From positions 434,001-498,000 of the forward strand of contig MCFH01000018.1 in the NCBI GenBank assembly GCA_002104945.1: DNA of 64,000 nucleotides, read 5' to 3'. This document shows positions 23,143-36,755 of the stretch, in pieces. This DNA comes from Piromyces finnis finn. Its lineage: Eukaryota; Fungi; Neocallimastigomycota. Within the stretch, counting starts at the first letter, position 1. Each line of letters starts with the position of its first letter. The notes under the pieces were generated by a model that worked only from the letters and a program-made list of their open reading frames with translations, did not search any database and was not told where the DNA came from. Both the position numbers and the translations under genes were made by a program.

Positions 23143-24023
23143 AAATAAATAATTAAAAAATTTTTATATATAATATATATTTGAAAAATAAATATACTAG
23201 TTTATTAATAATAATAACAAAAAAAAAGTCTAAATATTTGTTCAATATATTGTAATTGAATTCCTATTAATAGATTTGATAAACAAAAACATTTTTTTTA
23301 AAAAAAAAAATAAAATATTTTACCATATAAAATAATTTTTTAAAAATAGTATTAATTTCTATTTCATCGTTTTTGCTTTTCTTTATTTTTTAATAATTAT
23401 ATTATAATGTTTTCTATTCTATAAATTACTTATCCTTCTTAAAGTATTCCATAAAATTAATAAAGAAATAATAATAAACCTAACTATATTCCATTGTTTT
23501 AACAATTTATTTACACTTTTTTAATATTATAACCATATAAGTATATAAATTAATAAATAGATTAATACTATTAGTATTAATAAAATATTAAACACAAACA
23601 GGGAAAAAAAAATCATTTTTTATATAAAATTAAATATTTTTTATTAAATTAGTTTTTAATTATTTATAGATAAAAATTGTTTTTTTTTTAAATTTAAATG
23701 AATAAATAGATAGATAGTAATAGATACAAAATACAATTATTATTAACTTAAGATTATGATTCTATTAATTTAATAATAATGAAAATATAATTAATTTTTA
23801 TATTTTTAAAAAATAAAGTTTTCTTTCTTCATTTTTAAATGTTATTAATGTATAATTTATGATTTATATATTTGCTAATATTGGGTATTTATGAATATAA
23901 TTATTATTAGTTATGAATTATGTTTTGTTTTATATTTAATGCTTTAATAATATTAATATTATAATATTAATATTATTTTATAATTGAATATTTTAATGGT
24001 TAATTGAATGATGAATTTAATAT

Positions 24024-25526
24024 TTAGTTTAATAACTTTTGTTGCTTATTTTGTTGTTTAAGAGTATCTATTACTTTATAAATTCTATCTAATGATAAAT
24101 TGAGCTCATCTTGTTCAACTGCAAAACATATTCTGAACCAATTTCTTTCCGATTCTTTATCTTCACTGAAAAAGGCTTGACTTGGTGAAATGTAAATTCC
24201 TCCTTCTAATAATTTCATCCATAAATCAAATTCATTGAGTCCGGCTTGATGAAGATCAATGTAAATGAAGAATCCCGAATCTCCTTGAACATATGGAATA
24301 TGGTGAGCATTTAATGAATTGGTTAAGTGAGTGTAGTTCTTGAGTAATTTACGATTGTTATTAATAATGAAATGATCAGTCCATTCTTGATCTGATAAAA
24401 TATTAACAAGAATATTATCAATATTAGTTGGAATACAAGTTAAGAAACAAATCTTTTGCATAGCTGCCATAACTGTTTTAGAATATGAAATGGTTACTCC
24501 GATTCTTAATCCATTTAAACAAAAGTCTTTAGAAAATCCCCATAATCCATGAGTATTTTCTGGATCTGGAAGATCTAAAGAAAAGATGGATGTGAATTTA
24601 CTTTGTTTTCCATCAATATCACTTTCAATTCTTGGAGCATCTTTGTAGCTTTGACATTGTGAACAATGACAATGATAATCTTCAATGGTTTTACCTTCTT
24701 CAATATTTTGTTCAGTAATATCTTTCCAAGTTGAAAGTCCGTAGATTTCATCACAAATAACTATTAATCCATGTGATTTAGCAAAATTACAGAAAAGAAG
24801 AAGTTGTTCAGCACTGTAACTTCTTCCAAATGGATTGTTTGGATTAGCAATGATAATACCTTTGACTGGTTTATCAGCATTCTTTAATGCCTTTTCTAAA
24901 GCTGCTTCATCAACCTTTAAACAATCACCTTCACAATGTGGTACTGGGATGGTGTAGACTCTTGATCCATATTTAATATCAGCTTCGAAACCTCCGTAAT
25001 ATGGTCCTGGAACTAAAACGGCATCTCCATGATCAAATAAAACTTCTCCACATAAATTAAGAAGTGGTCCACATCCATTTCCTACACAAATATTTTCTTT
25101 ACTTAATAAAACTTTTGGATTGAAATGACGATTTAATAACTTGGCAACTTCTTCTCTTAATCTATCAGATCCTGGATTTGGACCATATAATAATTGTTCA
25201 GCAGTAACAGTTGAAACTTTTGGATCATTGATTTTACCTAACATTTCAACATTATTTAATTTGTTTTCGGCAGTTCCGAGATTGATAATACCATTTGGAT
25301 TTGTTTCTGGATGATATTTATTATTACGGACAATGATAATACCTTTACTTAAAAGAAATTCTTCTTTTTGAATTTCTAAAGCTCTATTGGATAACTTTGG
25401 ACCATTGAGTGGAGCATATTCAGATTTGATATTCTTTTGAATATTTGGAACTTTTAAAGATTTTTCCTTTAAGGTAATAATCTTTCTCTTTTTAGATATA
25501 ATAGGTTCGACGGTAGCAAGAGCCAT
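24024..25526 (-). CDS. ACC-synthase-like PLP-dependent aminotransferase class I/II, copy 1 (MALATV N-terminus), intronless
   Basis: Motifs YHPETNPNGIINLGTAEN, PYYGGFEAD, NPNNPFG, CDEIY, FSKDFCLNGLRIG (PLP lysine) and WFRICFA match the plant-ACS/ACCS family boxes. Confidence 0.9.
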   Translation of the reverse strand: MALATVEPIISKKRKIITLKEKSLKVPNIQKNIKSEYAPLNGPKLSNRALEIQKEEFLLSKGIIIVRNNKYHPETNPNGIINLGTAENKLNNVEMLGKINDPKVSTVTAEQLLYGPNPGSDRLREEVAKLLNRHFNPKVLLSKENICVGNGCGPLLNLCGEVLFDHGDAVLVPGPYYGGFEADIKYGSRVYTIPVPHCEGDCLKVDEAALEKALKNADKPVKGIIIANPNNPFGRSYSAEQLLLFCNFAKSHGLIVICDEIYGLSTWKDITEQNIEEGKTIEDYHCHCSQCQSYKDAPRIESDIDGKQSKFTSIFSLDLPDPENTHGLWGFSKDFCLNGLRIGVTISYSKTVMAAMQKICFLTCIPTNIDNILVNILSDQEWTDHFIINNNRKLLKNYTHLTNSLNAHHIPYVQGDSGFFIYIDLHQAGLNEFDLWMKLLEGGIYISPSQAFFSEDKESERNWFRICFAVEQDELNLSLDRIYKVIDTLKQQNKQQKLLN

Positions 25527-26171
25527 TTTTGATTCTTATTTATAATTTGTTATTTATATTCTATTAAAAATAATGACGTTTATATAAAATTTGACAGTTT
25601 TTTAAATAAAAGATAATAAAATATTTTTAATTAAAATTAAAATTTTAATTATAATTAATTTCAATGATTAAAATTCGCTTGTAATAAAAACAAAGAATTA
25701 TATAAAAAAATTCTTTTAAAATTGAAGTAATAATTTTTTAATTCTTGATTTGATGTATGTATGAATAATGAAATTATAAAATTTTGAAAATTCTTTTTCT
25801 TTATATATGAATTTTTAAAATTTTTAAATTTTGAATTTTTAATTTCATTTTTATTTTTCAATAATAAATAATTAAATTAATATATCATATATTAGATTAC
25901 ATTTAATTAATTCAATTAATATATAATTTTGTATTATCCATATATTCTATTTTTTGATTTATTAAAAGGAAAAGTTTAAAAAATTTTAACATTTCTTTAA
26001 CAAATTTAAACAGTATATTAGTTTATTTTAATCCAATTAAATGAATGAATATTTTGTAAAAATTATAGTTGATATTAGTTGATATTTAGCCAATAATATT
26101 AGAATAATTTGTTAATAATTCTTTTTAATAAATAAATTAATAAATTAATAATAAATAAATATATAAATATA

Positions 26172-26206
<35 letters not shown>

Positions 26207-27806
26207 ATTAATAAATAAATAAATTAAAAAATGTCAAAACAATTTAATAGTAATTTTATTTTCATTATTACTTTTTTGAAAAGGAAAGAATAAAGTTGGT
26301 TCATTCTTGATTTAAATAGCATAAAATGTTTAATTTAAAAGGAAAATAGTAGGATAAATTCTTTAAATAGTTTTGTTTTATATTTCATTTCATTCATATG
26401 TTTATTAAATATTTATAATTAATTTTAATTAATTGAAAATTAAATGGATTACTAAATATATTTCATTTCATTCTACTTATCCATCATTTCTACTTAAAAT
26501 ATACATTTAAAATAAATTGAAAATAAAACTATATAATATTTAAAAATTGACGTTTCTCAATTGTTTCCACTCTTTTTTAATATTAAATTAATATTATAGT
26601 TTGTAATATCTTTATTTATTAAGTATATATTCAAGTTTTAATCCAACGTTTTAGAAACATATAAAATGCTATTGAATTACTAAAAACTTTCTCTAAATTA
26701 TAAAGAAATATAAAAATTAAATTTGGTTTTTCATTAACTTATTTATATATCATATTTATATCATCTTTATATTTTTATTTAAAAATGCATAGTTGTATAT
26801 TTTTTATTAATCTAATTTATTATTAAAATAATACTAATGCTGAAATAATGAATTAAATAATGAATTCTTATTGTAATTAAAGAAAAAGAAAAATGAAAAT
26901 ATAAATAAAGTTCATTTTAATAAAGTGCGTTTATATTAAAAGATTAAGATTAAATGTTATTATGAATGAATATAAATATTTGAATATGGAATTAAAAGAA
27001 ATACATATTTATTTATAATTATTAATAATATTTCGATCGATTGGAGAGGTAACAAAGGAAGATTTCATAATATTAATTATTAATACTTTTAGTTTTTAAT
27101 AAAAATAGCAGTGGATAAATTTAAATATTTCCCATTATTAAAAGTCATTAAACATTATTGAATGTTATTATATTATATAAAATAATTATTTAATAATAAT
27201 AATAATAATTATACATCAAAAAAATAAAAAATGAAAAAATAAAAAAGTTTTTTTTAATAAAGTATTCATTTGGTTTGCTTTATTATTCTAATTATGAATT
27301 ATGTTTTATTTTTTTTTTTTTAATAATTTACTTCAACAAAAGTAAATGAAAAAATGATAAAGTTTTTATTGAAAGAAAATGAACACATTTCAATATTTTG
27401 TCGCTTAAAATTTGTTGATTTTTGAGAAATAAAATTTATTTAAATTTTTATTATTATAAAATATTCGTGTAACAATAAATCTACAAAATCTAATGAATCA
27501 ATAAATTAGAAAAGATTTTATTAATAAATAATATTAAAACTTTTTTAATAATAAATTTTTATTATAAAAAGAAGGAAATTTCATTTTTTTGTCAAATTCA
27601 TTATTCATATATCAAATCAATAATTAAAAAGTTTTCATTACAATTTTAAAAGAATTTTTCTATAATTTTTTATTTTTATTATTACAAGCACAAAAATATT
27701 TTAATAATTAAAATTAAAAAAAGTTTACTATTTTAATTTATTTTTAATATAAATTTATCATTTACAAAATTATATAACCAATTTATAATTTATAAAACTA
27801 CACAAA

Positions 27807-29303
27807 ATGCCATCTATTGCTATTGAAAATATTCCTATTATACCTAATAAGAGAAAGATTATTACCTTAAAGGAAAAATCTTTAAAAGTTCCAAATATTC
27901 AAAAGAATATCAAATCTGAATATGCTCCACTCAATGGTCCAAAGTTATCCAATAGAGCTTTAGAAATTCAAAAAGAAGAATTTCTTTTAAGTAAAGGTAT
28001 TATCATTGTCCGTAATAATAAATATCATCCAGAAACAAATCCAAATGGTATTATCAATCTCGGAACTGCCGAAAACAAATTAAATAATGTTGAAATGTTA
28101 GGTAAAATCAATGATCCAAAAGTTTCAACTGTTACTGCTGAACAATTATTATATGGTCCAAATCCAGGATCTGATAGATTAAGAGAAGAAGTTGCCAAGT
28201 TATTAAATCGTCATTTCAATCCAAAAGTTTTATTAAGTAAAGAAAATATTTGTGTAGGAAATGGATGTGGACCACTTCTTAATTTATGTGGAGAAGTTTT
28301 ATTTGATCATGGAGATGCCGTTTTAGTTCCAGGACCATATTACGGAGGTTTCGAAGCTGATATTAAATATGGATCAAGAGTCTACACCATCCCAGTACCA
28401 CATTGTGAAGGTGATTGTTTAAAGGTTGATGAAGCAGCTTTAGAAAAGGCATTAAAGAATGCTGATAAACCAGTCAAAGGTATTATCATTGCTAATCCAA
28501 ACAATCCATTTGGAAGAAGTTACAGTGCTGAACAACTTCTTCTTTTCTGTAATTTTGCTAAATCACATGGATTAATAGTTATTTGTGATGAAATCTACGG
28601 ACTTTCAACTTGGAAAGATATTACTGAACAAAATATTGAAGAAGGTAAAACCATCGAAGATTATCATTGTCATTGTTCACAATGTCAAAGCTACAAAGAT
28701 GCTCCAAGAATTGAAAGTGATATTGATGGAAAACAAAGTAAATTCACATCCATCTTTTCTTTAGATCTTCCAGATCCAGAAAATACTCATGGATTATGGG
28801 GATTTTCTAAAGACTTTTGTTTAAATGGATTAAGAATCGGAGTAACCATTTCATATTCTAAAACAGTTATGGCAGCTATGCAAAAGATTTGTTTCTTAAC
28901 TTGTATTCCAACTAATATTGATAATATTCTTGTTAATATTTTATCAGATCAAGAATGGACTGATCATTTCATTGTTAATAACAATCGTAAATTACTCAAG
29001 AACTACACTCACTTAACCAATTCATTAAATGCTCACCATATTCCATATGTTCAAGGAGATTCGGGATTCTTCATTTACATTGATCTTCATCAAGCCGGAC
29101 TCAATGAATTTGATTTATGGATGAAATTATTAGAAGGAGGAATTTACATTTCACCAAGTCAAGCCTTTTTCAGTGAAGATAAAGAATCGGAAAGAAATTG
29201 GTTCAGAATATGTTTTGCAGTTGAACAAGATGAGCTCAATTTATCATTAGATAGAATTTATAAAGTAATAGATACTCTTAAACAACAAAATAAGCAACAA
29301 TAG
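27807..29303 (+). CDS. ACC-synthase-like PLP enzyme, copy 2 (MPSIA N-terminus; AAG>TAG removes the last 4 residues)
   Basis: Same motifs as copy 1. It ends CAA TAG TTA TTA AAC TAA where the other copies read CAA AAG TTA/TTG TTA AAC TAA. Confidence 0.9.
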   Translation: MPSIAIENIPIIPNKRKIITLKEKSLKVPNIQKNIKSEYAPLNGPKLSNRALEIQKEEFLLSKGIIIVRNNKYHPETNPNGIINLGTAENKLNNVEMLGKINDPKVSTVTAEQLLYGPNPGSDRLREEVAKLLNRHFNPKVLLSKENICVGNGCGPLLNLCGEVLFDHGDAVLVPGPYYGGFEADIKYGSRVYTIPVPHCEGDCLKVDEAALEKALKNADKPVKGIIIANPNNPFGRSYSAEQLLLFCNFAKSHGLIVICDEIYGLSTWKDITEQNIEEGKTIEDYHCHCSQCQSYKDAPRIESDIDGKQSKFTSIFSLDLPDPENTHGLWGFSKDFCLNGLRIGVTISYSKTVMAAMQKICFLTCIPTNIDNILVNILSDQEWTDHFIVNNNRKLLKNYTHLTNSLNAHHIPYVQGDSGFFIYIDLHQAGLNEFDLWMKLLEGGIYISPSQAFFSEDKESERNWFRICFAVEQDELNLSLDRIYKVIDTLKQQNKQQ

Positions 29304-30916
29304 TTATTAAACTAAATATTAAATTAATCATTTAATTAAACATTAAAAAGAAATTATAATTCATAATTAATAATAATTATATACATAAATATATATACAT
29401 AAATACCCAATATTAACATATAATATTAGCAAATATATACATCATAAATTATACATCAATAACATTAAAAAATGAAGAAAGAAAACTTTATTTTTTAAAA
29501 ATATAAAAATTAATTATATTTTCATTATTATTAAATTAATAGAATCATAAATCTTAAGTTAATAATAATTGTATTTTGTATCTATTACTATCTATCTATT
29601 TATTTAATTACTAAATTTATTTTTTTATAAATATTTGTAAATAATTATATCTATTTTAATATATAAGTAAATTATTTGAATAAAAAAAATTAAAAATAAA
29701 TAAAAAAAAAATTGTGTACTAAAATTGAAAATATTAATTATAGAAAAATTTTAGAATAAATATCTTTTTTTTTTTTTTTTAGAAAACTTGTTGTTATAAT
29801 TAATTCTATTGTTTAGAAAAACCTCAATAGAAAAAGAAAAAATTACTTAAACAAATATAGTATATACAGGTTTTTTTATATAATTAAGATTATTAAGAAT
29901 AAAATATTTCTTTAACATTGAAATAATAAACAACTATATTTGGTGCAATTGTACTTCTTAAAAGTATAAAGTATAGTTGATACATCTTATTTTTATTTTT
30001 ATTTATTGAATAAATTAACATATTTATAATTTACTATTAAATAGTTTAGAAGTAGAAATTATATTTATTGTATTAATAAAAAAGCAAAAATGATTTATTA
30101 TTAATAATATTAATTATTATTTTAATTTTTTAAATAAGTATATTAATTACTTTAAAAAATAAAATATTTGAAATTATCTTATTAAAAGAAGAATTAAATA
30201 ATACATATTTTAAAGTATGAATATTTAAAAATTTTAATTTTTACATACTATTAATAAAAATAACTGTTCTTTTTTAATTAATAAAATATTATTCATGAAC
30301 TTTGTATTTCTAATTACTTATTTCATATATCAAAATTAAATTAATTGTACATTTGAATTCATCTATTGAAATATTTAATATTTCATAAATATCTTTAACA
30401 TTTTTACAAATATCTGAATTTTTTAATTGCATATTTTCAATTATTTATAAATAAATTAATATATATATATTCAAAAGTTTTTGATATAGATTAAATTATT
30501 AAATTTCTTATAAATAATAAAAAGTAATTATTTTTATATATATTTAGTTTTTTTATTTAATATTTTAATTTTAATTATTTACATAAATTTATAAAAGAGA
30601 CAATATTAATTAAAATATTAGATTAATAGAAATTAATAGATAGATACAATTATTAATAATGAGAGCATAATTAATTTTTATATTTTTAAAAAATAAAGTT
30701 TTCTTTCTTCATTTTTTAATGTTATTTATGTATAATTTATGATTTATATATTTGCTAATATTATATGTTAATATTGGGTATTTATGAATATAATTATTAT
30801 TAATTATGAATTATGTTTTGTTTTATATTTAATGCTTTAATAATATTAATATTATAATATTAATATTATTTTATAATTGAATATTTTAATGGTTAATTGA
30901 ATGATGAATTTAATAT

Positions 30917-32425
30917 TTAGTTTAATAACTTTTGTTGCTTATTTTGTTGTTTAAGAGTATCTATTACTTTATAAATTCTATCTAATGATAAATTGAGCTC
31001 ATCTTGTTCAACTGCAAAACATATTCTGAACCAATTTCTTTCCGATTCTTTATCTTCACTGAAAAAGGCTTGACTTGGTGAAATGTAAATTCCTCCTTCT
31101 AATAATTTCATCCATAAATCAAATTCATTGAGTCCGGCTTGATGAAGATCAATGTAAATGAAGAATCCCGAATCTCCTTGAACATATGGAATATGGTGAG
31201 CATTTAATGAATTGGTTAAGTGAGTGTAGTTCTTGAGTAATTTACGATTGTTATTAATAATGAAATGATCAGTCCATTCTTGATCTGATAAAATATTAAC
31301 AAGAATATTATCAATATTAGTTGGAATACAAGTTAAGAAACAAATCTTTTGCATAGCTGCCATAACTGTTTTAGAATATGAAATGGTTACTCCGATTCTT
31401 AATCCATTTAAACAAAAGTCTTTAGAAAATCCCCATAATCCATGAGTATTTTCTGGATCTGGAAGATCTAAAGAAAAGATGGATGTGAATTTACTTTGTT
31501 TTCCATCAATATCACTTTCAATTCTTGGAGTATCTTTGTAGCTTTGACATTGTGAACAATGACAATGATAATCTTCGATGGTTTTACCTTCTTCAATATT
31601 TTGTTCAGTAATATCTTTCCAAGTTGAAAGTCCGTAGATTTCATCACAAATAACTATTAATCCATGTGATTTAGCAAAATTACAGAAAAGAAGAAGTTGT
31701 TCAGCACTGTAACTTCTTCCAAATGGATTGTTTGGATTAGCAATGATAATACCTTTGACTGGTTTATCAGCATTCTTTAATGCCTTTTCTAAGGCTGCTT
31801 CATCAACCTTTAAACAATCACCTTCACAATGTGGTACCGGAATGGTATAGACTCTTGATCCATATTTAATATCAGCTTCGAAACCTCCGTAATATGGTCC
31901 TGGAACTAAAACGGCATCTCCATGATCAAATAAAACTTCTCCACATAAATTAAGAAGTGGTCCACATCCATTTCCTACACAAATATTTTCTTTACTTAAT
32001 AAAACTTTTGGATTGAAATGACGATTTAATAACTTGGCAACTTCTTCTCTTAATCTATCAGATCCTGGATTTGGACCATATAATAATTGTTCAGCAGTAA
32101 CAGTTGAAACTTTTGGATCATTGATTTTACCTAACATTTCAACATTATTTAATTTGTTTTCGGCAGTTCCGAGATTGATAATACCATTTGGATTTGTTTC
32201 TGGATGATATTTATTATTACGGACAATGATAATACCTTTACTTAAAAGAAATTCTTCTTTTTGAATTTCTAAAGCTCTATTGGATAACTTTGGACCATTG
32301 AGTGGAGCATATTCAGATTTAATATTCTTTTGAATATTTGGAACTTTTAAAGATTTTTCCTTTAAGGCGATAATCTTTCTCTTATTAGGTATAATAGGAA
32401 TATTTTCAATAGCAATAGATGGCAT
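30917..32425 (-). CDS. ACC-synthase-like PLP enzyme, copy 3 (MPSIA N-terminus)
   Basis: Same motifs; carries private variants IALKE and KDTP. Confidence 0.9.
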   Translation of the reverse strand: MPSIAIENIPIIPNKRKIIALKEKSLKVPNIQKNIKSEYAPLNGPKLSNRALEIQKEEFLLSKGIIIVRNNKYHPETNPNGIINLGTAENKLNNVEMLGKINDPKVSTVTAEQLLYGPNPGSDRLREEVAKLLNRHFNPKVLLSKENICVGNGCGPLLNLCGEVLFDHGDAVLVPGPYYGGFEADIKYGSRVYTIPVPHCEGDCLKVDEAALEKALKNADKPVKGIIIANPNNPFGRSYSAEQLLLFCNFAKSHGLIVICDEIYGLSTWKDITEQNIEEGKTIEDYHCHCSQCQSYKDTPRIESDIDGKQSKFTSIFSLDLPDPENTHGLWGFSKDFCLNGLRIGVTISYSKTVMAAMQKICFLTCIPTNIDNILVNILSDQEWTDHFIINNNRKLLKNYTHLTNSLNAHHIPYVQGDSGFFIYIDLHQAGLNEFDLWMKLLEGGIYISPSQAFFSEDKESERNWFRICFAVEQDELNLSLDRIYKVIDTLKQQNKQQKLLN

Positions 32426-34695
32426 TTTGTGTAGTTTTATAAATTATAAATTGGTTATATAATTTTGTAAATGATAAATTTATATTAAAAATAAATTGAA
32501 ATAGTAAACTTTTTTTAATTTTAATTATTAAAATATTTTTGTGCTTGTAATAAAAATAAAGAATTATAGAAAAATTCTTTTAAAATTGTAATGAAAACTT
32601 TTTAATTATTGATTTGATATATGAATAATGAATTTGACAAAAAAGTGAAATTTCCTTCTTTTTATAATAAAAATTTATTATTAAAAAAGTTTTAATATTA
32701 TTTATTAATAAAATCTTTTCTAATTTATTGATTCATTAGATTTTGTAGATTTATTGTTACACGAATATTTTATAATAATAAAAATTTAAATAAATTTTAT
32801 TTCTCAAAAATCAACAAATTTTAAGCGACAAAATATTGAAATGTGTTCATTTTCTTTCAATAAAAACTTTATCATTTTTTCATTTACTTTTGTTGAAGTA
32901 AATTATTAAAAAAAAAAAAATAAAACATAATTCATAATTAGAATAATAAAGCAAACCAAATGAATACTTTATTAAAAAAAACTTTTTTATTTTTTTGATG
33001 TATAATTATTATTATTATTATTAAATAATTATTTTATATAATATAATAACATTCAATAATGTTTAATGACTTTTAATAATGGGAAATATTTAAATTTATC
33101 CACTGCTATTTTTATTAAAAACTAAAAGTATTAATAATTAATATTATGAAATCTTCCTTTGTTACCTCTCCAATCGATCGAAATATTATTAATAATTATA
33201 AATAAATATGTATTTCTTTTAATTCCATATTCAAATATTTATATTCATTCATAATAACATTTTATCTTAATCTTTTAATATAAACGCACTTTATTAAAAT
33301 GAACTTTATTTATATTTTCATTATTCTTTTTCTTTAATTACAATAAGAATTCATTATTTAATTCATTATTTCAGCATTAGTATTATTTTAATAATAAATT
33401 AGATTAATAAAAAATATACAACTATGCATTTTTAAATAAAAATATAAAGATGATATAAATATGATATATAAATAAGTTAATGAAAAACCAAATTTAATTT
33501 TTATATTTCTTTATAATTTAGAGAAAGTTTTTAGTAATTCAATAGTATTTTATATGTTTCTAAAACGTTGGATTAAAACTTGAATATATACTTAATAAAT
33601 AAAGATATTACAAACTATAATATTAATTTAATATTAAAAAAGAGTGGAAACAATTGAGAAACGTCAATTTTTAAATATTATATAGTTTTATTTTCAATTT
33701 ATTTTAAATGTATATTTTAAGTAGAAATGATGGATAAGTAGAATGAAATGAAATATATTTAGTAATCCATTTAATTTTCAATTAATTAAAATTAATTATA
33801 AATATTTAATAAACATATGAATGAAATGAAATATAAAACAAAACTATTTAAAGAATTTATCCTACTATTTTCCTTTTAAATTAAACATTTTATGCTATTT
33901 AAATCAAGAATGAACCAACTTTATTCTTTCCTTTTCAAAAAAGTAATAATGAAAATAAAATTACTATTAAATTGTTTTGACATTTTTTAATTTATTTATT
34001 TATTAATTTATTTATTTATTTATTTATTTATTTATATATTTATATATTTATATATTTATATATTTATTTATTATTAATTTATTAATTTATTTATTAAAAA
34101 GAATTATTAACAAATTATTCTAATATTATTGGCTAAATATCAACTAATATCAACTATAATTTTTACAAAATATTCATTCATTTAATTGGATTAAAATAAA
34201 CTAATATACTGTTTAAATTTGTTAAAGAAATGTTAAAATTTTTTAAACTTTTCCTTTTAATAAATCAAAAAATAGAATATATGGATAATACAAAATTATA
34301 TATTAATTGAATTAATTAAATGTAATCTAATATATGATATATTAATTTAATTATTTATTATTGAAAAATAAAAATGAAATTAAAAATTCAAAATTTAAAA
34401 ATTTTAAAAATTCATATATAAAGAAAAAGAATTTTCAAAATTTTATAATTTCATTATTCATACATACATCAAATCAAGAATTAAAAAATTATTACTTCAA
34501 TTTTAAAAGAGTTTTTTTATATAATTCTTTGTTTTTATTACAAGCGAATTTTAATCATTGAAATTAATTATAATTAAAATTTTAATTTTAATTAAAAATA
34601 TTTTATTATCTTTTATTTAAAAAACTGTCAAATTTTATATAAACGTCACTATTTTTAATAGAATATAAATAACAAATTATAAATAAGAATCAAAA

Positions 34696-36198
34696 ATGGC
34701 TCTTGCTACCGTCGAACCTATTATATCTAAAAAGAGAAAGATTATTACCTTAAAGGAAAAATCTTTAAAAGTTCCAAATATTCAAAAGAATATCAAATCT
34801 GAATATGCTCCACTCAATGGTCCAAAGTTATCCAATAGAGCTTTAGAAATTCAAAAAGAAGAATTTCTTTTAAGTAAAGGTATTATCATTGTCCGTAATA
34901 ATAAATATCATCCAGAAACAAATCCAAATGGTATTATCAATCTCGGAACTGCCGAAAACAAATTAAATAATGTTGAAATGTTAGGTAAAATCAATGATCC
35001 AAAAGTTTCAACTGTTACTGCTGAACAATTATTATATGGTCCAAATCCAGGATCTGATAGATTAAGAGAAGAAGTTGCCAAGTTATTAAATCGTCATTTC
35101 AATCCAAAAGTTTTATTAAGTAAAGAAAATATTTGTGTAGGAAATGGATGTGGACCACTTCTTAATTTATGTGGAGAAGTTTTATTTGATCATGGAGATG
35201 CCGTTTTAGTTCCAGGACCATATTACGGAGGTTTCGAAGCTGATATTAAATATGGATCAAGAGTCTACACCATCCCGGTACCACATTGTGAAGGTGATTG
35301 TTTAAAGGTTGATGAAGCAGCTTTAGAAAAGGCATTAAAGAATGCTGATAAACCAGTCAAAGGTATTATCATTGCTAATCCAAACAATCCATTTGGAAGA
35401 AGTTACAGTGCTGAACAACTTCTTCTTTTCTGTAATTTTGCTAAATCACATGGATTAATAGTTATTTGTGATGAAATCTACGGACTTTCAACTTGGAAAG
35501 ATATTACTGAACAAAATATTGAAGAAGGTAAAACCATCGAAGATTATCATTGTCATTGTTCACAATGTCAAAGCTACAAAGATGCTCCAAGAATTGAAAG
35601 TGATATTGATGGAAAACAAAGTAAATTCACATCCATCTTTTCTTTAGATCTTCCAGATCCAGAAAATACTCATGGATTATGGGGATTTTCTAAAGACTTT
35701 TGTTTAAATGGATTAAGAATCGGAGTAACCATTTCATATTCTAAAACAGTTATGGCAGCTATGCAAAAGATTTGTTTCTTAACTTGTATTCCAACTAATA
35801 TTGATAATATTCTTGTTAATATTTTATCAGATCAAGAATGGACTGATCATTTCATTATTAATAACAATCGTAAATTACTCAAGAACTACACTCACTTAAC
35901 CAATTCATTAAATGCTCACCATATTCCATATGTTCAAGGAGATTCGGGATTCTTCATTTACATTGATCTTCATCAAGCCGGACTCAATGAATTTGATTTA
36001 TGGATGAAATTATTAGAAGGAGGAATTTACATTTCACCAAGTCAAGCCTTTTTCAGTGAAGATAAAGAATCGGAAAGAAATTGGTTCAGAATATGTTTTG
36101 CAGTTGAACAAGATGAGCTCAATTTATCATTAGATAGAATTTATAAAGTAATAGATACTCTTAAACAACAAAATAAGCAACAAAAGTTGTTAAACTAA
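34696..36198 (+). CDS. ACC-synthase-like PLP enzyme, copy 4 (MALATV N-terminus)
   Basis: Translation in the ORF track is identical to copy 1. Confidence 0.9.
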   Translation: MALATVEPIISKKRKIITLKEKSLKVPNIQKNIKSEYAPLNGPKLSNRALEIQKEEFLLSKGIIIVRNNKYHPETNPNGIINLGTAENKLNNVEMLGKINDPKVSTVTAEQLLYGPNPGSDRLREEVAKLLNRHFNPKVLLSKENICVGNGCGPLLNLCGEVLFDHGDAVLVPGPYYGGFEADIKYGSRVYTIPVPHCEGDCLKVDEAALEKALKNADKPVKGIIIANPNNPFGRSYSAEQLLLFCNFAKSHGLIVICDEIYGLSTWKDITEQNIEEGKTIEDYHCHCSQCQSYKDAPRIESDIDGKQSKFTSIFSLDLPDPENTHGLWGFSKDFCLNGLRIGVTISYSKTVMAAMQKICFLTCIPTNIDNILVNILSDQEWTDHFIINNNRKLLKNYTHLTNSLNAHHIPYVQGDSGFFIYIDLHQAGLNEFDLWMKLLEGGIYISPSQAFFSEDKESERNWFRICFAVEQDELNLSLDRIYKVIDTLKQQNKQQKLLN

Positions 36199-36755
36199 AT
36201 ATTAAATTCATCATTCAATTAACCATTAAAATATTCAATTATAAAATAATATTAATATTATAATATTAATATTATTAAAGCATTAAATATAAAACAAAAC
36301 ATAATTCATAACTAATAATAATTATATTCATAAATACCCAATATTAGCAAATATATAAATCATAAATTATACATTAATAACATTTAAAAATGAAGAAAGA
36401 AAACTTTATTTTTTAAAAATATAAAAATTAATTATATTTTCATTATTATTAAATTAATAGAATCATAATCTTAAGTTAATAATAATTGTATTTTGTATCT
36501 ATTACTATCTATCTATTTATTCATTTAAATTTAAAAAAAAAACAATTTTTATCTATAAATAATTAAAAACTAATTTAATAAAAAATATTTAATTTTATAT
36601 AAAAAATGATTTTTTTTTCTTTTTATTATTTCTTCTTTATTGTGTATAATTATTAACTTTGTCAATTTTAATAATTTTTTTTAAATGAAAATATATAATT
36701 AAGAAATTTATAAATTTCTTTGAGTTATTTATGAAATATCAGCCTATTTTGAACT

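Follow-up and report, generated by a model that had tools for sequence, protein, structure and literature searches.

The stretch of DNA analysed here, termed the window, comprises 64,000 nucleotides of the anaerobic gut fungus Piromyces finnis (positions 434001-498000 of contig C90) and contains four genes for proteins related to 1-aminocyclopropane-1-carboxylate (ACC) synthase, arranged as inverted pairs within a larger inverted duplication of about 13 kb. The assembly of 56.46 Mb in 232 contigs was made from PacBio reads alone, using fragments of >10 kb, with Falcon, FinisherSC and Quiver (PMC5622200). The G+C content across the window ranges from 13 to 33%, and the palindromic block is placed mid-contig at 457.6-470.6 kb of the 858.9-kb C90. 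The coordinates of the arms and inner repeats in Table 1 were obtained by repeat finding and self-BLAST of the window; positions given without a contig name refer to the window.

The block is composed of two outer arms, termed units 1 and 2, each carrying a divergent pair of genes (A1 and B1 in unit 1, A2 and B2 in unit 2); the block has four intact open reading frames (ORFs) of 498-502 amino acids in total. The outer arms align in inverted orientation with 98.9% identity over 5,804 columns, with 30 mismatches and 11 gap openings, the differences being mostly transitions together with indels of 62, 15, 14 and 8 bp, and the outer edge of the palindrome is sharp and located at an A9 run. Within each unit the A and B genes form a smaller inverted repeat with inner arms that are 96.6-98.3% identical over their full length (BLAST) and 99% identical over cores of 1.5-1.6 kb, separated by spacers of 2.3 kb. 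As the two pairs carry their intergenic DNA in opposite orientations, the layout is <-A B-> spacer <-B' A'->. An earlier note on this DNA had proposed this arrangement at the same coordinates, and the arms, the inner repeats and the inverted intergenic DNA all bear it out.

The outer spacer measures 1,444 bp under strict identity and ~1.0 kb (29637-30649) if the arms are taken to include the diverged 3' flanks of B1 and B2. This core is AT-rich and asymmetric, and its only matches elsewhere in the genome are of low complexity. The inner ends of the outer arms are not a plain mirror, with the 3' flank of B2 carrying the haplotype found next to the A genes and that of B1 carrying the haplotype of a third unit of the same kind, described below as unit 3. 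B1 ends at a TAG at 29301 where B2 has AAG, and its product is without the final four residues KLLN. B1 and B2 are convergent with ~1.6 kb between their stops (29303-30917), and read-through into the antisense strand would give a long hairpin RNA.

Table 1. Features of the nested palindrome, with positions in the window
Feature	Position	Strand	Remarks
Left outer arm, unit 1 (<-A1, intergenic, B1->)	23603..29396		Inverted match to 36619-30840
Right outer arm, unit 2 (<-B2, intergenic, A2->)	30840..36619		Repeat finding, self-BLAST, arm alignment
Central spacer	29397..30839		Edges are the diverged B1/B2 3' flanks, 84-88% alike; unique core ~29637-30649
Gene A1, 500 amino acids, ACC-synthase-like enzyme	24024..25526	-	A-type promoter and N terminus MALATVEP...
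Gene B1, 498 amino acids	27807..29303	+	B-type N terminus MPSIAIEN...; TAG stop 4 codons early
Gene B2, 502 amino acids, B-type	30917..32425	-	Least homogenised; C1-like states at columns 57, 58, 132
Gene A2, 500 amino acids, A-type	34696..36198	+	Protein identical to A1
Inner repeat arm, unit 1, A1 side	23689..25505		Coding sequence from codon 8 and ~335 bp of 3' flank; partner 27834-29619
Inner repeat arm, unit 1, B1 side	27834..29619		Partner 23689-25505
Inner repeat arm, unit 2, B2 side	30650..32398		Partner 34717-36452
Inner repeat arm, unit 2, A2 side	34717..36452		Partner 30650-32398
Divergent intergenic region, unit 1	25527..27806		A-type and B-type promoters; (AATA)n microsatellite 26127-26232
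Divergent intergenic region, unit 2	32426..34695		Inverted copy of 25527-27806
Conserved ~205-bp intergenic block, unit 1	26236..26440	+	100% in three C90 units, 98% in the C1 unit
Conserved ~205-bp intergenic block, unit 2	33774..33978	-	C90:467774-467978

The genes had been called ACC-synthase-like in the earlier note, and this assignment is upheld by a match to Pfam PF00155 (E = 2.8e-51), shared by all four proteins, and by plant ACC synthases being the best solved relatives (E = 1.6e-43, ~25% identity). The AlphaFold model has a mean predicted local distance difference test score (pLDDT) of 91.4, and its top 13 matches in the PDB are ACC synthases with target-normalised template modelling (TM) scores of 0.86-0.89. 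In the alignment with the plant enzymes the lysine that carries pyridoxal phosphate (PLP), K333 in the sequence FSKD, together with N228, D259, Y262, Y177, R341 and R465, is invariant or nearly so, giving the full set of features of a fold-type I PLP enzyme (a lysine of the S-x-S-K-D type, the Asn, Asp and Tyr of the cofactor site and the Arg of the carboxylate site). The predicted structure shows the fold of an ACC-synthase-like protein in which the PLP residues are all retained, and the protein is presumed to be an active PLP enzyme. E87 preserves the Glu of the AEN motif. The Tyr of the QDYHG motif characteristic of ACC synthase is lacking, its position being occupied by Asn (GPNPG) in all P. 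finnis copies, by Tyr in some relatives and by Phe in the canonical paralogue; these two motif residues correspond to Tyr85 (QDYHG) and Glu47 (AEN) of the apple enzyme. Ethylene formation from ACC requires oxygen, which is absent for an anaerobe. The closest relatives outside the phylum are ACC-synthase-like proteins of chytrids and animals, and the family therefore looks vertically inherited. Within the ACC synthase family the enzyme is a fungus-specific and abundant branch, and it is of interest in its own right.

A Cys/His-rich insert of ~55 amino acids (residues 268-324, with the sequence HCHCSQC; approximately 24555-24725 on the minus strand) is modelled with high confidence and could form a metal site. 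It is confined to the expanded subfamily of the Neocallimastigomycota and is absent from the paralogue on contig C211 and from the chytrid, animal and plant relatives. Within the insert region of A1 lies a 54-nucleotide in-frame GT..AG segment (24642-24695, minus strand; codons 278-295) that encodes GKTIEDYHCHCSQCQSYK and occurs at the same place in the other copies. The NCBI model of one P. finnis copy (P0004) treats it as an intron, with similar removals in the models of other species, and it is kept by metagenome homologues and folds at pLDDT >90. Its removal is either a gene-model error or the mark of an exitron.

The genome contains ten copies of this 500-amino acid subfamily and the intron-bearing paralogue on C211, which is 42% identical. 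Unit 3 is also on C90, at a distance of 220 kb (C90:689,657-695,769). With 96-98% identity it is collinear with an arm over 23699-29636, including the intergenic DNA; its two arms match each other at 99%, it differs from units 1 and 2 by ~1.15% substitutions, and all three units are internally collinear. A fourth unit on contig C1 (C1:1,090,521-1,096,203) comprises arms of 2,130 bp that are 99.7% identical, and it is ~93% identical to the C90 copies. Both of its genes have the B-type promoter, and the identical stretch is longer than in the C90 units. Two single copies (C90:685,564-687,120 and C151:305,524-307,071) have 81-84% nucleotide identity. The former, on the minus strand at ~84%, is in tandem with gene A3 of unit 3 and 3 kb from that unit. 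With three family members present, C90:685-696 kb may be the ancestral site. Within the 276 kb of C90 that were scanned, no repeats other than these units reached 500 bp with 90% identity or more.

Synonymous divergence (dS) amounts to 0.27-0.30 when C1 copies are compared with C90 copies and to ~0.01 within pairs, and the ratio of nonsynonymous to synonymous divergence (dN/dS) of 0.08-0.10 indicates that the genes are under purifying selection. The C1 pair, whose arms are the longest and the most nearly identical, has a G+C content of third codon positions (GC3) of 0.217, as against 0.153-0.169 in the C90 and single copies; this single comparison fits GC-biased conversion. In the protein tree eight P. 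finnis copies form one clade, and three copies each from Piromyces sp. E2 and Neocallimastix lanati form near-identical sets of their own. The three N. lanati copies are on one contig, and two of the three from Piromyces sp. E2 are together on another. This pattern fits recurrent local amplification, conversion or both. A metagenome scan returned four contigs of ~1.7 kb with 73-77% identity and no gene context. Selection for dosage, suggested earlier from the four copies of the block, may be at work, the number to be considered being the ten copies in the genome and not four.

The central observation is the abrupt change in identity between the A and B genes of a pair. The first 16 codons of the A and B genes are 71% identical, and thereafter identity is 100% in units 1 and 3. 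Upstream, the A- and B-type promoters are homologous with shared blocks, with 73-74% identity over 283 bp and ~50 gapped positions, whereas the homogenised stretch covers the coding sequence and ~300 bp of 3' flank. In the codon alignment all fixed differences between A and B genes (12 substitution columns and a 6-base indel) fall within the first 42 columns, and after column 42 no column separates A from B. At seven later columns A3 and B3 instead share a state that sets them apart from units 1 and 2; with the C1 copies as the reference for polarity, the derived state falls in unit 3 at four of these columns and in the common ancestor of units 1 and 2 at three. No single tree accommodates these site partitions, and therefore sequence must have been exchanged between the members of a pair since the separation of the units. 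Internally the genes of the C1 pair are 99.7-99.8% alike, and yet they are only ~93% identical to the C90 pairs. Gene conversion within each inner A/B pair can be regarded as demonstrated, and it is a familiar process, ordinary in kind. Ectopic conversion between the coding sequences of the C1 and C90 copies was considered and rejected, as the differences are evenly spread and the longest clean run is 114 nucleotides against a simulated 95th percentile of 112.

The intergenic DNA contains a block of ~205 bp that is present in the four units (also at C90:692318-692522 and C1:1093542-1093724) and nowhere else in the genome, and that has the same orientation to the nearest gene in the C1 and C90 units. 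It is 98% alike between C1 and C90 despite the gene dS of ~0.28, and the remaining spacer is not alignable. The sharing of this block between the C1 spacer and the C90 intergenic DNA indicates that the pair architecture predates the split between C1 and C90. The block may be a shared cis-regulatory module or a patch of recent ectopic conversion. An RNA gene in the intergenic DNA or the block was rejected, with no tRNA, no Rfam match at E<=0.1 and fold z-scores of +0.67 and -0.24, as was a 20-codon ORF in the block, which is disrupted by indels in the C1 copy.

The outer arms show a different pattern. Beyond codon 14, A1 and A2 differ at 3 coding positions and A1 and B1 at 2, compared with 9 between B1 and B2. 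B2 has C1-like bases at columns 57, 58 and 132 and unit 3-like bases at columns 660 and 714, and B1 has the bases of the A genes at all five; at column 669 a derived base is confined to A1 and B1. The opposite holds at column 1249 and in the 3' flank, with B1 carrying the unit 3 haplotype and B2 the A haplotype, which in B2 includes the 62-bp insertion and reaches ~270 bp beyond the stop. The flank haplotype with this insertion is shared by A1, A2 and B2 and the other haplotype by B1, A3 and B3. Substitutions between the outer arms number 3 in the 1.9-kb A side, 9 in the 2.3-kb intergenic DNA and ~14 in the 1.5-kb B side, the excess on the B side being due to the inner conversion events in each arm. 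Over the A genes and intergenic DNA the divergence is ~0.3%. The comparisons between arms gave no evidence for conversion between the outer arms, and their likeness fits a recent origin, a very recent duplication being enough to explain it. Identity beyond the age of the duplication, the hallmark of concerted evolution, is thus seen in the inner A/B arms and not in the outer arms. Arm-to-arm conversion, which the earlier note had regarded as permitted by the structure, holds for the inner pairs, where the step in identity and the incompatible sites are found, and is not supported for the outer arms, where B1 and B2 have 9 coding differences and A1 and B1 only 2.

The history that would account for these features begins with an old inverted duplication giving a head-to-head pair of ACC-synthase-like genes with a separate promoter for each copy. 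The pair of ~6 kb would then have been copied as a unit, yielding the C1 copy (dS ~0.28) and the copy at C90:689.7-695.8 kb, and in the latest step the unit would have been copied again in mirror orientation ~1 kb away to form the nested palindrome. Throughout, intrachromosomal conversion by recombinational repair between the inverted genes of a pair would have allowed one gene repeatedly to overwrite the other from codon 8-15 to ~300 bp beyond the stop, leaving the promoters and first codons free to diverge. After the split of the arms, the initial 1.0-1.2 kb or so of the B1 coding sequence would have been overwritten by A1 in unit 1, and in unit 2 A2 would have overwritten the final 0.3-0.5 kb of B2 together with its 3' flank. 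Two independent post-duplication tracts, one per outer arm, are the simplest reading of the site patterns. We infer the order of events, the tract directions, a fold-back or template-switch origin of the inverted copy and any benefit from dosage.

The nested gene palindrome is considered a real segmental structure of the P. finnis nuclear genome, and the stepwise account of its origin as a whole is assigned a probability of about 0.8. Some points weigh against this account. The tract directions are based on 1-7 sites each. Column 930, where a T found only in A1 matches the C1 copies, requires a back-mutation or a patchy tract. An independent inverted duplication at C1 is less probable and would have to account for the shared 205-bp block.

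An assembly artefact, in which one true unit is mirrored by a chimeric fold-back read or by the joining of haplotypes or paralogous loci, would be compatible with the use of PacBio data only, but is unlikely on several features of the sequence. A fold-back read gives identical arms, whereas the arms here are distinguished by ~30 substitutions and by the four indels listed above, and these differences are unlike the homopolymer errors typical of a polished PacBio consensus. The arms are separated by a unique, asymmetric spacer of 1 kb, both outer flanks are unique and deep within the 859-kb contig, all four ORFs are intact, and no second assembly of the locus was found in the genome search. Unit 3 cannot have been the source of an artefact because the differences between it and the arms exceed those between the arms. 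The earlier note had argued that the single-base differences between arms speak against a simple assembly mirror, and that argument is strengthened by the preponderance of transitions, by the indels and by the agreement of B2-specific bases with the C1 copies, a pattern not to be expected from errors. No sequence resembling a SMRTbell adapter was found in the window, which is weak evidence.

That the four copies are alike solely through very recent duplication, without any conversion, is less probable still. Youth explains the ~0.3-0.5% difference between the outer arms, but it does not explain inner pairs with 26-29% divergence in the promoters and over the first 14 codons and identity over the rest of the gene, nor the mutually incompatible site partitions, nor a C1 pair that is 99.7-99.8% alike and ~7% from the C90 pairs and yet has the same pair architecture and 205-bp block. 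The least probable of these alternatives is a mobile element, a 6-kb foldback-like cassette with gene-bearing terminal inverted repeats of ~1.8 kb that transposes whole. The homology between units 1 and 3 does stop almost exactly at the ends of the inner repeats (23699 and 29636), but conversion that maintains similarity in the arms and nowhere else would produce the same pattern, and target-site duplications were found at none of the four units. The unit has no transposase and no further ORF of at least 100 amino acids, the repeat ends vary, with arms of 1.8 kb on C90 and 2.13 kb on C1, and there are four copies only. A triplication by origin-dependent inverted-repeat amplification was rejected separately, as just two copies are adjacent and the third is 220 kb away. 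As for the physical behaviour of the palindrome, flip-flop inversion between arms is mechanistically possible. Cruciform extrusion requires short spacers, and the cruciform formation suggested in the earlier note is therefore not expected with spacers of 1.0-2.3 kb.

The locus provides a compact and easily read case of concerted evolution within 13 kb, with an old promoter split, a sharp boundary within the coding sequence and two independent, complementary tracts, and in it conversion between inverted partners 2.3 kb apart outpaces any exchange between the larger outer arms. A more speculative and rather doubtful extension is that fold-back duplication with conversion limited to coding sequence is a habitual mode of gene-family expansion in this very AT-rich anaerobic fungus. 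The block would then be a palindrome of palindromes in which one gene has undergone that process twice; the partners of a pair would share one protein under different promoters, so that copy number and regulation would evolve separately. If gene palindromes are general in anaerobic gut fungi, they would help to explain large near-identical families and would caution annotators and assemblers that such mirrors are real. For anaerobic fungi, the literature search gave no report of ACC-synthase-like genes or of inverted duplications or gene conversion at loci of this kind.

The palindromes on primate sex chromosomes (human Y P1-P8, and those of the X) carry genes in arms that are kept alike by gene conversion (PMC8600007, PMC8327919, PMC8981503). 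The P. finnis locus resembles these in having inverted arms, a unique spacer, intact multicopy arm genes and identity held by conversion. It differs in being 100 to 100,000 times smaller and on a fungal contig, and in that conversion is seen only for the inner 1.8-kb arms, where it stops within the coding sequence and leaves the promoters different. Human Y palindrome P1 also has smaller palindromes nested in its arms. A further parallel is provided by Drosophila Hsp70Aa and Hsp70Ab, a divergent near-identical pair undergoing concerted evolution by gene conversion. As in P. finnis, the two genes are head-to-head, ~2 kb apart, with coding sequences homogenised within a locus while loci diverge; the gene and organism are different, and in P. 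finnis a mirror-image duplication of the whole pair has been added.

Fold-back and template switching are routes to inverted amplification, with examples in the origin-dependent inverted-repeat amplification of yeast and in Candida albicans, where long inverted repeats occur at the breakpoints of rearrangements. The inverted P. finnis copy similarly adjoins its source across a short unique spacer, and such an origin of the outer palindrome is plausible, whereas the locus differs from origin-dependent amplification in being without an inverted triplication, and no short junction repeats were identified in it. At the level of the protein, plant ACC synthase (PDB codes 1b8g, 1iax and 7dlw) and the animal and chytrid ACC-synthase-like proteins are the best matches in sequence and fold and have the PLP and carboxylate residues in common with the P. 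finnis enzyme, which is set apart from the plant enzyme by its identity of ~25%, the Asn at the QDYHG Tyr position and the additional Cys/His insert.

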